NCBI GenBank assembly: GCA_964270895.1
Contig: OZ185443.1
DNA length: 64,000 nucleotides
Source: Podarcis filfolensis
Lineage: Eukaryota
Reading direction: 5' to 3' (one strand)
Shown here piece after piece: positions 14,083 to 32,965 of this stretch. The notes under the pieces are model-generated. The model saw only the letters and a list, made by a program, of their open reading frames with translations. It ran no database searches and was not told the DNA's origin. Made by a program: the position numbers and the translations under genes. Within the stretch, counting starts at the first letter, position 1. Each line of letters starts with the position of its first letter.

Positions 14083-14973
14083 TTGCCACAGGGTTCTGTC
14101 TTGGGCCCAGTCTTATTCAACATCTTTATCAACGACTTGGATGATGGACTCAAGGGCATCCTGATCAAATTGGCAGATGACACCAAACTGGGAGGGGTGG
14201 CTAACACCCCAGAGGACAGGATCACACTTCAAAACGACCTTGACAGATTAGAGAACTGGGCCAAAACAAACAAGATGAATTTTAACAGGGAGAAATGTAA
14301 AGTATTGCACTTGGGCAAAAAAAATGAGAGGCACAAATACAAGATGGGTGACACCTGGCTTGAGAGCAGTACATGTGAAAAGGATCTAGGAGTCTTGGTT
14401 GACCACAAACTTGACATGAGCCAACAGTGTGACGCGGCAGCTAAAAAAGCCAATGCAATTCTGGGCTGCATCAATAGGAGTATAGCATCTAGATCAAGGG
14501 AAGTAATAGTGCCACTGTATTCTGCTCTGGTCAGACCTCACCTGGAGTACTGTGTCCAGTTCTGGGCACCACAGTTCAAGAAGGACACTGACAAACTGGA
14601 ACGTGTCCAGAGGAGGGCAACCAAAATGGTCAAAGGCCTGGAAACGATGCCTTATGAGGAACGGCTAAGGGAGCTGGGCATGTTTAGCCTGGAGAAGAGG
14701 AGGTTAAGGGGTGATATGATAGCCATGTTCAAATATATAAAAGGATGTCACATAGAGGAGGGAGAAAGGTTGTTTTCTGCTGCTCCAGAAAAGCGGACAC
14801 GGAGCAATGGTTCCAAACTACAAGAAAGAAGATTCCACCTAAACATTAGGAAGAACTTCCTGACAGTAAGAGCTGTTCGACAGTGGAATTTGCTGCCATG
14901 GAGTGTGGTGGAGTCTCCTTCTTTGGAGGTCTTTAAGCAGAGGCTTGACAACCATATGTCAGGAGTGCTCTGA
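14083..14973 (+). CDS. CR1 reverse transcriptase ORF fragment
   Basis: Uninterrupted 296 aa: [62 protein letters not shown]. Confidence 0.92.
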
Positions 14974-20580: not shown

Positions 20581-21667
20581 GGAAGAAGCCATGGATAAGT
20601 ATATATTAGAGTTGATGTCCAATACTTTTTTTGCTCTTTGGCTTCCCATAACACGCTCAACAAACTAGAATGGGAGGATGCATGAAAGGAAGTAGTACAT
20701 GAGAGAACCTGCAAATTGAGCATGTTTACTGACAATCTGGTCTGGGGTGTCCCACTAGGCTGGGATTGGCTCATTGAATATACCAAAAGTTATGCCAAAA
20801 TATAACACAGAAACTAGTGACTGTTTACAGGGAGATCAGTTGGTTTCTCCCAGTGTAAATGGTCATTAAAATGGCTCCTTAACTGCCAGCAATTTAGTTT
20901 ACTCTCCTTTTATCATCACAATTGCAGACCTTTCAAACTGTTTCCTCTGGAACAGCACAGTCTTGGCAGGATGCAAAACTTTCACTTCTTAAGGAAAAAT
21001 ATGCAAAAGCAGGTGATGCTTCCTATTTCCCTCCTCAGATGCAAAGATGATTATACCTACCTAAGGGAGGAAAACCTTCAACATGTGTTTTGCTTCCAGC
21101 ATATTTCTGGTTTTGCACCTTATTAACAACAAACCTGCCAACAGGTGTAACTGTGCATGACTTCATCCGTTGGAGGGAAAGACTTAATGAGTCTTTCCAA
21201 ACTTGCAAATTACAAAGCTGCAATGTGGAGATTAACAAAGTATATTTATTCCTAGCTTGTAAATTTAGAATTCAGTATGATAATGGCCAGGGTTATTGAA
21301 CTCTATCTCAGATTTCTTCAAGACCCTTTGTAGATTAGCTCCTTTGCTTCCCTGAACAGATGCTCATGGAGCATACCCTCCTTAAGTTCCAGAGCCAGGG
21401 ATGCTGCAAGGTGATAGGGAGAAGAGAAATGCACATCTTCATTCTGCACACTTCACACACTTTAGCATTTAACAGAAGAAAACACATACACTGCCCCCCC
21501 AATACGCATACAACACTATAGACCAGATCTGAGAAGAAGCCAAATTGAACATATCACATTCATGGGGCTCAGAACACACTCATAAAATATTTAATTCCAC
21601 AAATACCAGGCCCCCCAAATCCATTCATACAAAGATGTGGACTTCAGTTCTAGGATAATTAAACAGT

Positions 21668-21813
21668 CTTTTATTGCAGTTATATCCCACCTTCTGTGGA
21701 ACTCAAGGCAGCATATCTAGGTTTCTAGGCAGTTTCCCAGCTGGGTTCTTACCAAATCCAGGCCTGCTTAGCGCCCCCAACTGCTGCATCATGTGCCTTC
21801 AAACCATACCCAG
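21668..21813 (-). mobile_element. 5S-derived SINE-like element with L2-type tail
   Basis: Shares tgaag(g/c)cacatga and gctaagcaggcct with 20484-20580, and ends tgccttgagttcc...ggtgggatataa...aataaaa. Confidence 0.5.
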
Positions 21814-22055
21814 TAACTTTTCTAATTAATCCAAAACTCCCAGATTAAAACCACGAACCTTTTGACATAGCTGGCATACAAAGAATAGGGGGCATCCAGA
21901 AGTACAGGTGGCTCAGTGCTCATATATTCTTCCTCCAAGGCATGGAGGGCAACAGTGATGGCAGTGTGTGCAGAAGGAACAGATCTTAGCACCCATCTTA
22001 GCTGTCCCTGACACAGTGCAACACATGTGGGAAATTACACACATGAAGAACATGT

Positions 22056-22255
22056 TACAGGTAGGTAGCCAGCCATGTTGGTCTGCTGTAATTGAAACAA
22101 AATTTTAAAAAAAATCCTCCCAGTAGCACCTTAGAGACCAACTAAGTTTATTTTTGGTATGAACTTTAGTGTGTACGTGTATCTGAAGAAGTGTGCATGC
22201 ACACGAAAGCTCATACCAATAACAAACTTAGTTGGTCTCTAAGGTGCTACTGGAA
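22056..22255. mobile_element. Penelope-like element, inverted pseudo-LTR remnant (continues at 23691-23706)
   Basis: Inverted arms 22120-22176 / 22199-22253 (ccagtagcaccttagagaccaactaagttt / aaacttagttggtctctaaggtgctactgg), plus a hammerhead core. Confidence 0.85.
22179..22216 (+). ncRNA. Minimal type I hammerhead ribozyme (Penelope-type)
   Basis: GTAT-CTGAAGA-A-GTGTGCATGCACAC-GAAA-GC-TC-ATAC: stem I GTAT/ATAC, CUGANGA core, palindromic stem II, GAAA, loopless AGCT stem III, and a UC cleavage site after 22212. Confidence 0.8.
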
Positions 22256-23690
22256 AGCGTGTTCTCACTAAAGGAGAGCACGTGTTGCGGATGGGGCCTA
22301 GCAAGACACCCCATAGTTGCCAGGCAGTATAAGATAGAGGGGCCTGGCAAGGATTGGCTGTTTGAGTTGCTGGGATAAAATGGATGTTGCCAATTTGGGG
22401 GTGGGAACAGGTTATTTAAACAAGGTTCACAGCAAGCTGCTTTCTCTTTCAATGTGGGAACCGGATCACCCGCCCGCCCTCCCTTTTGGGCTTGTGCTTT
22501 GACCTTGCTATGCCTATCATGGGGTCGTCCGCCTTGGTGCGGGGGCCTGGTAGGAATTTTTCCATTTGGCTGATTAGTGTGTGCCATTTGGTTTTTGCCT
22601 ACTGCGTAGCAAATCGTCACAACTTGTAAGGTTGGCGGTTAGGCATTGGTTTAAATTGGTTGGTGGAGGGGTATGGATTGGCTGTGCCTGCCCCTCCAAT
22701 GCTGCTGCTGCATGGGAATTCTGTTAAAGGAATTCAGGGGCTTACCATCCTCTCGTCCAAACCCCTGGAATCGGGTGCGGGCCGCGTAAGCTCCTGGGAG
22801 CATGCGGGGAGAAGCTGAGGGTCTGTGTCGCAGCTCCAGTTATCCCTGATCTTGTTCCTCCACACTGGCTCTCGCTGGAATCCGGGAGTCAGTGCTGTCC
22901 CCCAAGGCGGGGGGGACAGCTAGTCATAACCAATGCCTAAGCAAGGCGGTTAGGCATTGGTTTAAATTGGTTGGTGGAGGGGTATGGATTGGCTGTGCCT
23001 GCCCCTCCAATGCTGCTGCTGCATGGGAATTCTGTTAAAGGAATTCAGGGGCTTACCATCCTCTCGTCCAAACCCCTGGAATCGGGTGCGGGCCGCGTAA
23101 GCTCCTGGGAGCATGCGGGGAGAAGCTGAGGGTCTGTGTCGCAGCTCCAGTTATCCCTGATCTTGTTCCTCCACACTGGCTCTCGCTGGAATCCGGGAGT
23201 CAGTGCTGTCCCCCAAGGCGGGGGGGACAGCTAGTCATAACCAATGCCTAAGCAAGGCGGTTAGGCATTGGTTTAAATTGGTTGGTGGAGGGGTATGGAT
23301 TGGCTGTGCCTGCCCCTCCAATGCTGCTGCTGCATGGGAATTCTGTTAAAGGAATTCAGGGGCTTACCATCCTCTCGTCCAAACCCCTGGAATCGGGTGC
23401 GGGCCGCGTAAGCTCCTGGGAGCATGCGGGGAGAAGCTGAGGGTCTGTGTCGCAGCTCCAGTTATCCCTGATCTTGTTCCTCCACACTGGCTCTCGCTGG
23501 AATCCGGGAGTCAGTGCTGTCCCCCAAGGCGGGGGGGACAGCTAGTCATAACCAATGCCTAAGCAACCACTCACAATTTGTATGTTTAATAAAGTTGTGG
23601 CCAAAACTATGCCAAAAACCTTAAACAAAAATTTATGAGTGATGTGTGAGTTATTGGGGTAGGGGTGTTTTGGGGGACCTCAGCACGCAA
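22256..23690 (+). mobile_element. Non-coding Ngaro/DIRS-like element inserted in the Penelope arm
   Basis: Removing it rejoins ggtgctactggaa|ggaatttttttattttg, the complement of the left arm. It contains cccgcccgccctccc and terminal aataaagttgtggcc (23588-23602). The family call is inferred from the motif shared with 6800-7760. Confidence 0.65.
22634..23566. repeat. Tandem array of 3 x 311 bp, each unit bounded by a 13-bp inverted repeat
   Basis: Units start at 22634, 22945 and 23256 and look identical by eye. TTAGGCATTGGTT lies near each start and AACCAATGCCTAA near each end. Confidence 0.99.
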
Positions 23691-23706
23691 GGAATTTTTT
23701 TATTTT

Positions 23707-23924
23707 GCAACTGCTTTGGATTACAACCGTTTTGGATTACAACCACGTCAAACCCAGAAGTGTGTGTCCCTTTTTTTGTATTACAACCTCTTTGGGGGGG
23801 GGATTACAACCAATTCTGGGGGGGGAGGCCCCACTGGTGAAAGTGCACCTTAGGTTACAACCGGTTTTGGTTTACAACTGGACCTCCAGAATGGATTATG
23901 GTTGTAAACCAAGGTACCGCTGTA
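23707..23924. mobile_element. Tc1/mariner (Tigger-like) MITE, right part
   Basis: Repeated ttacaacc motifs and end aaccaaggtaccgctg+TA. Confidence 0.65.
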
Positions 23925-24933
23925 TTATGTGAATTGAGCAGAATTAGAACATGGGAACAGGTACTCACAAGCTATTAAATTAATCTTTTATTTGTTCTTC
24001 TGCAAATTCCCTACTCTGACGTTACAAGTTTACTTTTAGATAGGCAGTTCTTTCAAGTGACAGCTGAACAAGAAGGATATGGCTTTTCCATATCTGCAAG
24101 ATGTGGCATTTCTTCTAGGAAGTGCCAAAGTTATTCCTCCATTTGTGTCCTCCAATGGAACTACATGTACTTGGTGCAGTTCCATAGCTGAGTTTTGTCA
24201 CATGTCGCTCCTTGGCTATTGGAAAACATTTGGTTGTTGACAAGCTGAAGCACACTGCACACATGATTTCAAACAGCATTTGCTATTTACTTCTCAGTGG
24301 AAATTAATATTATCCATTACATTATCTCACTTTGTATTTTTTTTAAAAAAAATGTATTTTTTTTAAAAAAAAAACCTCACAGTGGTCCACAACATATTAA
24401 AACATCAAATAAAAAAAAACCCAGAATAAAACATTATTGAATAAAATCAAATGTACAGTATACATTCAAAGCAACATAATTAAAAGGGAACTTAAATACT
24501 GATCTTAAACATTTCAAACACATTTAGCACACACACAAACACACAAAAATCTTAAACATTTCAAAATAAAACATTAATAAAGGAAGCCAAATATAAAATG
24601 CACATTTAAAACAGCATAATTAACAAGAGAATAACATCTTCATATAACCATACAACATGTCTGTTGCTGTTGCTACCAATCCTGCCAATGGTGGTTCATG
24701 GCAGGTGGTAGCTGTGACCTATGTTTGCACTAAGAGACAGCCAAGGTGATCCCTTGACTCTTCAGCACTCAGCTTTCTGTAGTCAATCAGGGCCCTGCCC
24801 TCCCAGGCCAGGTGGGAAAATATTGTTCATTGTTCTTTGAAACCTATCTGAGATTGTCTCTCCTTCCCATACACCATCCAATATATTCATACCAGCTTGG
24901 AAATAGTTCCTAGCTTACTCTTTGAACTTTAAT

Positions 24934-31888: not shown

Positions 31889-32965
31889 TTATTATTTGTA
31901 CCCCGCCCATCTGGCTGGGTTTCCCCAGCCACTCTGGGCGGCTTCCATAGAAAACCAAAAATACACTAAAATATCACAGATTAAAAACTTCCCTGAACAG
32001 GGCTGCCTTAAGATGTCTTCTGAATGTCAGGTAGTTATTTATCGCTTTGACATCCGATGGGAGGGCGTTCCACAGGGCAGGCGCCACTACCGAGAAGGCC
32101 CTCTGCCTGGTTCCCTGTAGCTTTGCTTCTCGCAATGAGGGAACCACCAGAAGGCCCTCGGCGCTGGACCTCAGCATCCGGGCAGAACGATGGGGGTGGA
32201 GATGCTCTTTCAGGTATACTGGGCCGAGGCCGTTTAGGGCTTTAAAGGTCAACACCAGCACTTTGAATTGTGCTCGGAAACGTACTGGGAGCCAAAGTAG
32301 GTCTTTCAAGACCGGTGTTATGTGGTCTCGGCGACCGCCCCCAGTCACCAGTCTAGCTGCCGCATTCTGGATTAGTTGTAGTTTCCGAGTCACCTTCAAA
32401 GGTAGCCCCACGTAGAGCGCATTGCAGTAGTCCAAGCGGGAGATAACCAGAGCATGCACCACTCTGGCGAGACAGTCCGCGGGCAGGTAGGGTCTCAGCC
32501 TGCGTACCAGGTGGAGTTGGTAGACAGCTGCCCTGGACACAGAATTGACCTGCGCCTCCATGGACAGCTGTGAGTCCAAAATGACTCCCAGGCTGCGCAC
32601 CTGGTCCTTCAGGGGCACAGTTACCCTATTCAGGACCAGGGAGTCCTCCACACCAGCCCGCCCCCTGTCCCCCAAAAACAGTACTTCTGTCTTGTCAGGA
32701 TTCAACCTCAATCCATTAGCCGCCATCCATCCTCCAACTGCCTCCAGGCACTCACACAGGACCTTCACCGCCTTCACTGGTTCTGATTTGAAAGAGAGGT
32801 AGAGCTGGGTATCATCTGCATATTGATGGACACCCAGTCCAAACCCCCTGATGATCTCTCCCAGTGGCTTCATATAGATGTTAAAAAGCATGGGGGAGAG
32901 GACGGAACCCTGAGGCACCCCACAAGTGAGGGCCCAGTGGGATGAAAAAGGTCGTTCACCCAAGT
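31843..32965 (-). mobile_element. L2 LINE, 5'-truncated, young, with (TTA)n tail
   Basis: L2 RT ORF, 3' UTR gaagccgcccagagtggctgggg...gggcggggtacaaataa, and a (TAA)n run at 31843-31888. Confidence 0.96.
31974..32963 (-). CDS. L2 reverse transcriptase ORF fragment
   Basis: 329 aa: GVPQGSVLSPMLFNIYM, HQYADDTQLY, LNPDKTE, SRLDYCNALY, LQLIQNAAARL, HITPVL. Confidence 0.92.
   Translation of the reverse strand: MGERPFSSHWALTCGVPQGSVLSPMLFNIYMKPLGEIIRGFGLGVHQYADDTQLYLSFKSEPVKAVKVLCECLEAVGGWMAANGLRLNPDKTEVLFLGDRGRAGVEDSLVLNRVTVPLKDQVRSLGVILDSQLSMEAQVNSVSRAAVYQLHLVRRLRPYLPADCLARVVHALVISRLDYCNALYVGLPLKVTRKLQLIQNAAARLVTGGGRRDHITPVLKDLLWLPVRFRAQFKVLVLTFKALNGLGPVYLKEHLHPHRSARMLRSSAEGLLVVPSLREAKLQGTRQRAFSVVAPALWNALPSDVKAINNYLTFRRHLKAALFREVFNL

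Follow-up and report, generated by a model that had tools for sequence, protein, structure and literature searches.

Three identical 311-bp units lie head to tail in a gap-free stretch of lizard DNA 64,000 nucleotides long (the window). Their outer borders fall within one helix of a long closing stem. We tentatively favor, at somewhat short of even confidence, the reading that the array is a recent tandem triplication of a stem-closed, folding, internal domain of a dispersed repeat, and that it arose by a stem-guided DNA copying error after the repeat had inserted here. The array is multimeric at this locus only, as far as was seen. The site is an intergenic or intronic stretch of the lizard genome. 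The window contains no N stretches, has about 40% G+C, a CpG observed/expected ratio (o/e) of 0.18 and microsatellites, and looks like vertebrate non-coding DNA.

Units, arms and breakpoints

The array was characterized by TRF and by direct string comparison. TRF gave a period of 311, 3.0 copies, 100% matches and no indels over 22634-23566 (score 1866), and the string comparison showed the three units to be the same letter for letter. Each unit begins with GGCGG followed by TTAGGCATTGGTT and ends with AACCAATGCCTAA followed by GCAA. The two 13-bp arms are perfect complements and are separated by 276 nt within the unit. The search for arm matches returned six, compared to 0.18 expected. These results agree with the initial annotation, which had described three identical 311-bp units starting at 22634, 22945 and 23256, each closed by a 13-bp inverted repeat. 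A 13-9-13 palindrome is present at both junctions between units. It had also been cautioned that any head-to-tail join of such a unit makes a palindrome automatically, and this caution was justified. The 13-9-13 palindromes are by-products of unit joining and are absent in the one-unit state. The features are listed in the table.

Features of the array and of the repeats around it (positions in the window)
Feature	Position	Strand	Basis or remark
Unit 1 of the 311-bp tandem array	22634-22944	+	identical to units 2 and 3
Unit 2 of the 311-bp tandem array	22945-23255	+	identical to units 1 and 3
Unit 3 of the 311-bp tandem array	23256-23566	+	identical to units 1 and 2
Left 13-bp arm, TTAGGCATTGGTT	22639-22651, 22950-22962, 23261-23273		inverted-repeat search
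Right arm, pairs with the left arm	22928-22940, 23239-23251, 23550-23562		inverted-repeat search
Junction 1, 13-9-13 palindrome	22928-22962		inverted-repeat search
Junction 2, 13-9-13 palindrome	23239-23273		inverted-repeat search
GGTTG, pairs with CAACC at 23564-23568	22630-22634		5-bp helix containing both breakpoints
Extended imperfect inverted repeat, left arm	22619-22651		partner 23550-23581
Host repeat, nested insert of 1,435 bp (813 bp with one unit)	22256-23690	+	contig joins, palindrome restored on removal, CpG o/e
Palindromic very high-copy element, interrupted by the insert	22060-22255		right arm continues at about 23691-23707
High-copy repeat with six GGATTACAACC-like motifs	23708-23925	+	ends in GGTACCGCTG followed by TA; unique DNA thereafter

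The two breakpoints of the duplication, 22633/22634 on the left and 23566/23567 on the right, are located in a common 5-bp helix with an offset of 2 nt. This confirms two earlier observations: that the inverted repeat extends outward through GGTTG and CAACC, and that the breakpoints sit about 2 nt apart across the base of the stem. If cut at both breakpoints, the duplicated piece would bear a 2-nt 3' overhang. The extended inverted repeat scores 31, and shuffled sequences reached a mean of 18.5 and a maximum of 26. No bases are shared at the junction on either side. When the window is collapsed to one unit, it contains a single perfect 13-mer inverted repeat with a spacer of 150-500 nt, and this is the one that bounds the unit. 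The coincidence of the breakpoints with the stem is therefore far beyond chance, and the association between duplication and stem is real. The earlier view that this is not an ordinary slippage repeat was borne out by the lack of microhomology, by breakpoints placed across the only long inverted repeat of the window, and by the unit being a discrete, stably folding domain.

The host repeat and its other copies

To place the array in its genomic context, Logan contigs were aligned to positions 21400-24800 (3,401 letters). The contigs are short-read contigs from three DNA runs and one possible RNA run (X15). The DNA runs come from three organisms: A, which appears to be of the same species, and B and C, which are sister species. 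Single contigs at a depth of 11-70 cover the unique flanks (21400-21969 and 24022-24249). Between about 22084 and 24021 there are thousands of contigs in the three organisms, with summed depths of 10^3 to 2.6x10^6. Over the 311-bp unit the summed contig depth is 10^3-10^5 in the three organisms, again compared to 11-70 in the unique flanks. This pile-up identifies the region from about 22060 to 23925, the unit included, as a high-copy interspersed repeat. Contigs from the unique flanks of organisms B and C enter the ends of the repeat (up to 22083 on the left, from 23896 or 23917 on the right), indicating that the outer elements predate the split of A, B and C.

The region is a mosaic. Contigs from other copies join 22222-22254 straight to 23689-23691, or stop at 22254, which is one terminus of the insert. 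In-silico removal of 22256-23690 restores the outer part of the surrounding palindrome. Together, the joined flanks and the rebuilt palindrome indicate that 22256-23690 is a nested insertion. Its target duplication is at most the 2-bp AA. On the + strand, the insert carries a TATA-like TATTTAAA motif at 22413-22420 and an AATAAA motif at 23588-23593, the latter followed by a GT-rich stretch. It has 51-57% G+C and a CpG o/e of 0.44-0.46, which is four to six times the 0.07-0.12 of its flanks. The high CpG o/e suggests either that the insertion is young or that the stretch has stayed unmethylated. A copy in organism E is about 97% identical over 22250-22525 and has a different left flank. The host family therefore looks young, based on the CpG o/e and on this copy.

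The insert contains no ORF bearing a Pfam domain, and has no poly(A) tail, clear target duplication or LTR ends. A 130-aa ORF adjoining the array on the minus strand (22228-22620) found no relatives in a protein search. Several classes of mobile element were considered. The unit is not a MITE with terminal repeats of its own: the TTA and TAA beside the arms extend the inverted repeat and are not a direct target duplication, and contigs from other copies pass the borders. Helitron ends are not supported for either the unit or the 1,435-bp insert, since no TC...CTRR pattern was found by reading. LTR ends are not supported for either, since no TG...CA with a 4-6 bp duplication was found.

The borders of the unit are crossed by contigs from other copies. 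The left border, 22633/22634, is crossed by X2 record 20, X8 record 27 and X15 records 11-12, and the right border, 23566/23567, by X1 record 5, X2 record 21 and X8 record 29. In addition, an 886-nt contig (X15 record 13) aligns at 22623-22747 and 23531-23633 with 164 nt between the two segments, compared to 162 predicted for one unit. By de Bruijn logic, a contig that is unbroken across a unit border has no junction branch, and the copy that it represents is monomeric. Other copies thus appear to be monomeric among the matches listed of more than 40,000 pieces, in alignments to a reference that itself contains the junctions. The unit borders are, to judge from these contigs, not element termini. 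The 311-bp unit is by the same sequence comparison an internal domain of the insert, and not a free-standing element. An exact 26-mer of the left border had no matches among metagenome contigs.

These contigs bear on the proposal that the inverted-repeat-bounded segment is a module which is excised, circularized or re-copied precisely. The initial annotation had named monomeric other copies as one result that would speak against this proposal, and such copies are present among the matches listed: their contigs cross the borders, and one of them carries exactly one unit. Precise re-copying at the inverted repeat fits our data. Programmed excision is not supported, as other copies run through the borders among the matches listed. 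A programmed module that is excised, circularized and then rolling-circle amplified or put back into the genome, perhaps through a tyrosine recombinase that uses the arms like those of loxP/FRT, is in our view highly improbable. Such a module would account for borders that match the inverted repeat precisely and for a junction that is the same as that of a one-unit circle, and homology-driven re-integration of a circle would yield exactly such an array. However, a circle is unnecessary for the data. A single unit has 276 nt between its arms, which no lox/FRT site does (the spacer of a functional site is 6-8 bp), and the 13-9-13 site itself does not exist before duplication. No recombinase domain was found by Pfam in the ORFs scanned, which were all 17 of at least 120 aa in the window plus 10 near the array (75-110 aa, between 17 and 29 kb), a scan that would miss broken genes shorter than these. 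The only matches were two to RVT_1, both 8 kb or more from the array. The analogy to loxP/FRT sites and to DIRS/Ngaro elements drawn in the initial annotation is therefore unsupported: the junction palindromes form automatically, and none of the 27 ORFs has a recombinase domain.

Divergence of the flanks provides an estimate of the age of the triplication. Organism A differs from organisms B and C by 1.0-1.5% in the flanks. If the array were older than the split of A, B and C, 4.7-7 substitutions would be expected in the three units, and the probability of finding none is about 0.001-0.01. The absence of any difference between units places the triplication after this split, unless conversion or polishing homogenized the units. 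Polishing also enters an explanation that we consider improbable, that the array is an artefact of assembly or polishing and that the true locus has one or two units, or units that are not truly identical. The perfect identity and the exactly integral 3.0 copies would fit such an artefact, as would the location of the array inside a high-copy repeat, where polishing may homogenize copies; the aligned data are short-read contigs. On the other hand, the long reads behind chromosome-scale assemblies easily cross an array of 933 bp, the window is gap-free, and an assembler has no reason to place borders at a stem with a 2-nt stagger.

Fold of the unit and origin of the array

The unit folds exceptionally well. 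As + strand RNA, its predicted free energy is -151.7 kcal/mol (z -5.44), and none of 100 dinucleotide shuffles was as good. The minus strand gives -122.2 kcal/mol (z -4.04), and the neighboring 311 nt of the same insert, used as a control, give z +1.41. The predicted + strand RNA fold is multibranched with five or six hairpins, and the 13-bp stem is its closing element. In the one-unit form with flanks, the 13 stem pairs have probabilities of 0.6-1.0 with RNA parameters and 0.8-1.0 with DNA parameters. The units had no match to any Rfam family, including tRNA-like ones, in a search of 21900-24100 at E values up to 10, and the window had none at the gathering threshold.

The favored reading, a local accident of DNA copying, would proceed as follows. 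Single-stranded DNA at a replication fork or in a repair intermediate would fold through the 13-bp stem and its GGTTG/CAACC extension. The folded stem would place the two ends of the domain side by side. The domain's end would then be linked to its start in a homology-free manner, either by a polymerase switch or by break-and-join across the helix, which would generate two copies. The third would arise when these 311-bp copies slipped or exchanged unequally, and the same processes would keep the copies identical. Neither a dedicated recombinase nor a ribozyme would be involved. The resulting array is probably a neutral, possibly polymorphic, copy-number variant. Stem-guided copying fits the data because the units are exact, the breakpoints are located in one helix of the closing stem, and the stem is predicted to pair under both DNA and RNA parameters.

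Several observations argue against a DNA accident. Zero microhomology is unusual for replication slippage, and two successive events are required. The + strand folds better as RNA, and both the TATA-like and the AATAAA motifs are on this strand; these point to an RNA-level structure and hence to reverse transcription as the slipping step. In addition, the array could have arrived with the insert, as the host family looks young.

Accordingly, an origin during retrotransposition has to be considered, although we regard it as rather unlikely. Here, reverse transcriptase would have copied the folded + strand RNA domain three times, and the element would have inserted already triplicated. It could have jumped across the closing stem, or made end-to-end template jumps between RNA pieces released by cuts in that stem. 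The strand preference of the fold, the shared orientation of fold and motifs and the apparent youth of the family are all in its favor. The blunt, homology-free junction suits template jumping, a single event yields three identical units, and a 2-nt 3' stagger is the expected leftover of an RNase III-type cut in a stem. Abnormal strand transfers have also been proposed as the source of tandem repeats in LTR elements (PMC7004042). This origin is weakened by the host repeat itself, which has none of the poly(A) tail, clear target duplication or LTR ends described above as absent, and by the other copies, which are monomeric at both borders among the matches listed, with no second multimeric copy seen. 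The depth profile gives no sign of abundant copies that lack the domain; the depth at 23584 is 5-6 times lower than that at 23607.

A more specific version seems to us a long shot. An RNase III-type enzyme, for example Microprocessor, would crop the repeat transcript at the stem, and reverse transcriptase would jump between the pieces or roll on a circularized piece, giving insertions with 0, 1, 2, 3 or more copies joined as GCAA/GGCGG. The combination of an RNase III cut with an end-to-end template jump is speculation, and the stagger by itself is about a 1-in-10 coincidence. If this RNA-stage module is real, a retroelement would have left in the genome a trace of how the host processes RNA. 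Should the same junction recur elsewhere in the family, this would be evidence that the life cycle of an abundant lizard repeat includes a structure-specific step, either RNA cropping with template jumping or passage through a circular intermediate.

Relation to known repeats and the surrounding mosaic

The array belongs with the known tandem duplications of internal parts of dispersed repeats, and what is distinctive is the clean structural signature at its breakpoints. In squamates, internal parts of interspersed repeats are tandemly duplicated, mostly in short heterogeneous arrays, and SINE-derived satellites occur (PMC10702118). In LTR retrotransposons, short tandem arrays of internal parts are found, and abnormal strand transfer during replication has been proposed to generate them (PMC7004042). 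The lizard array shares the main features of such transposable-element-derived tandem repeats. Its unit is an internal part of a many-copy dispersed repeat and is shorter than the element; a few copies are arranged head to tail at a single locus. Unlike them, it has three perfectly identical units and borders at a long closing stem, a feature that those papers leave undescribed, and its host is an unclassified repeat, neither a recognized Squam SINE nor a recognized LTR element. Monomeric copies of the unit are present among the matches listed. No short words from the unit turned up in the supplementary material of PMC10702118, and in the texts of papers short words of the sequence matched only primers, by chance.

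A second known system is found at replication forks, where inverted repeats or hairpins guide rearrangements. Hairpin-guided fork rearrangements are mainly deletions and inverted amplifications, and include the ODIRA template switch (PMC10766183; reviewed in PMC12708500). As in these, secondary structure places the breakpoints, distant positions are joined, and there is little or no homology at the junction. The outcome differs. The known events are mostly deletions or inverted duplications and triplications, whereas the lizard array consists of direct copies of an entire stem-loop. Compared to loxP/FRT sites and DIRS/Ngaro elements, the junctions share 13-bp arms flanking a short asymmetric spacer. 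However, the site in the array was born of duplication, a recombinase gene is lacking, as are terminal or internal complementary repeats of the DIRS type, and the unit is non-coding.

The array is an unusually clean natural example of direct tandem multiplication, both of its breakpoints being located in a single helix of a long closing stem. Its junction has no homology, and because the copies are still identical, the junction survives in its original form. Satellites can grow from a 'nucleus' of this kind, and cases like it show that secondary structure is able to seed tandem arrays.

The units also resemble animal non-LTR retrozymes (PMC7229834): they are highly folded, a few hundred nt long and arranged in tandem, and the genome contains repeats that bear hammerheads. 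We consider it most improbable that the array is retrozyme-like, that is, that each unit is a self-cleaving RNA which is circularized and reverse transcribed by a rolling circle. Retrozymes with tandem units are present in animal genomes (PMC7229834; bioRxiv 10.64898/2026.07.22.740005), the units here are compactly folded, and a hammerhead-like core, CTGAAGA...GAAA, is found 430 nt upstream in the palindromic element. However, the units differ from retrozymes in having no hammerhead or other known ribozyme: the core CTGANGA...GAAA is absent from both strands of the unit, and 21900-24100 contains no Rfam ribozyme match at E values up to 10. The upstream core lies outside the units, and is itself not recognized by Rfam. 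With the only core at 22183-22208, a hammerhead or retrozyme nature of the units is refuted for known ribozymes.

The palindromic element that the insert interrupts has 54-nt arms with 93% identity, and the highest summed contig depth of the stretch, up to 2.6 million. Its center, at 22183-22208, consists of CTGAAGA, the self-complementary GTGTGCATGCACAC and GAAA, which resembles the hammerhead motifs of Penelope-like elements. Rfam at E values up to 10 returned only generic long-hairpin matches for the element (mir-559, RUF6-5 and others), and no hammerhead.

On the other side of the insert, the unique-flank contigs begin at 23896-23917, inside the high-copy repeat at 23708-23925. This repeat contains a hairpin formed by 23867-23878 and 23901-23912. 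Read in reverse orientation, its end (CAGCGGTACC and further sequence, next to TA) resembles a Tc1/mariner- or pogo-type terminal repeat. No second end of the form GGTACCGCTG followed by TA was found elsewhere in the window. Contigs of X15, from organism E, match 22250-22747, 23340-23633 and 23827-23925 at 85-97%. In organism E, some copies of the insert and the right-hand repeat may be transcribed, X15 being only guessed to be RNA.

Two ORFs in the window have Pfam matches, both to C-terminal parts of RVT_1. They are located at 14083-14973 on the + strand (E 6e-12) and at 31974-32963 on the minus strand (E 1e-17), and neither contains a domain of the RNase H, integrase or recombinase type. 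Both are probably pieces of LINEs that have no relation to the array. A further small duplication is located at 24333-24372. It is an exact 20-bp tandem duplication of TGTATTTTTTTTAAAAAAAA, and each copy is a T8/A8 palindrome.
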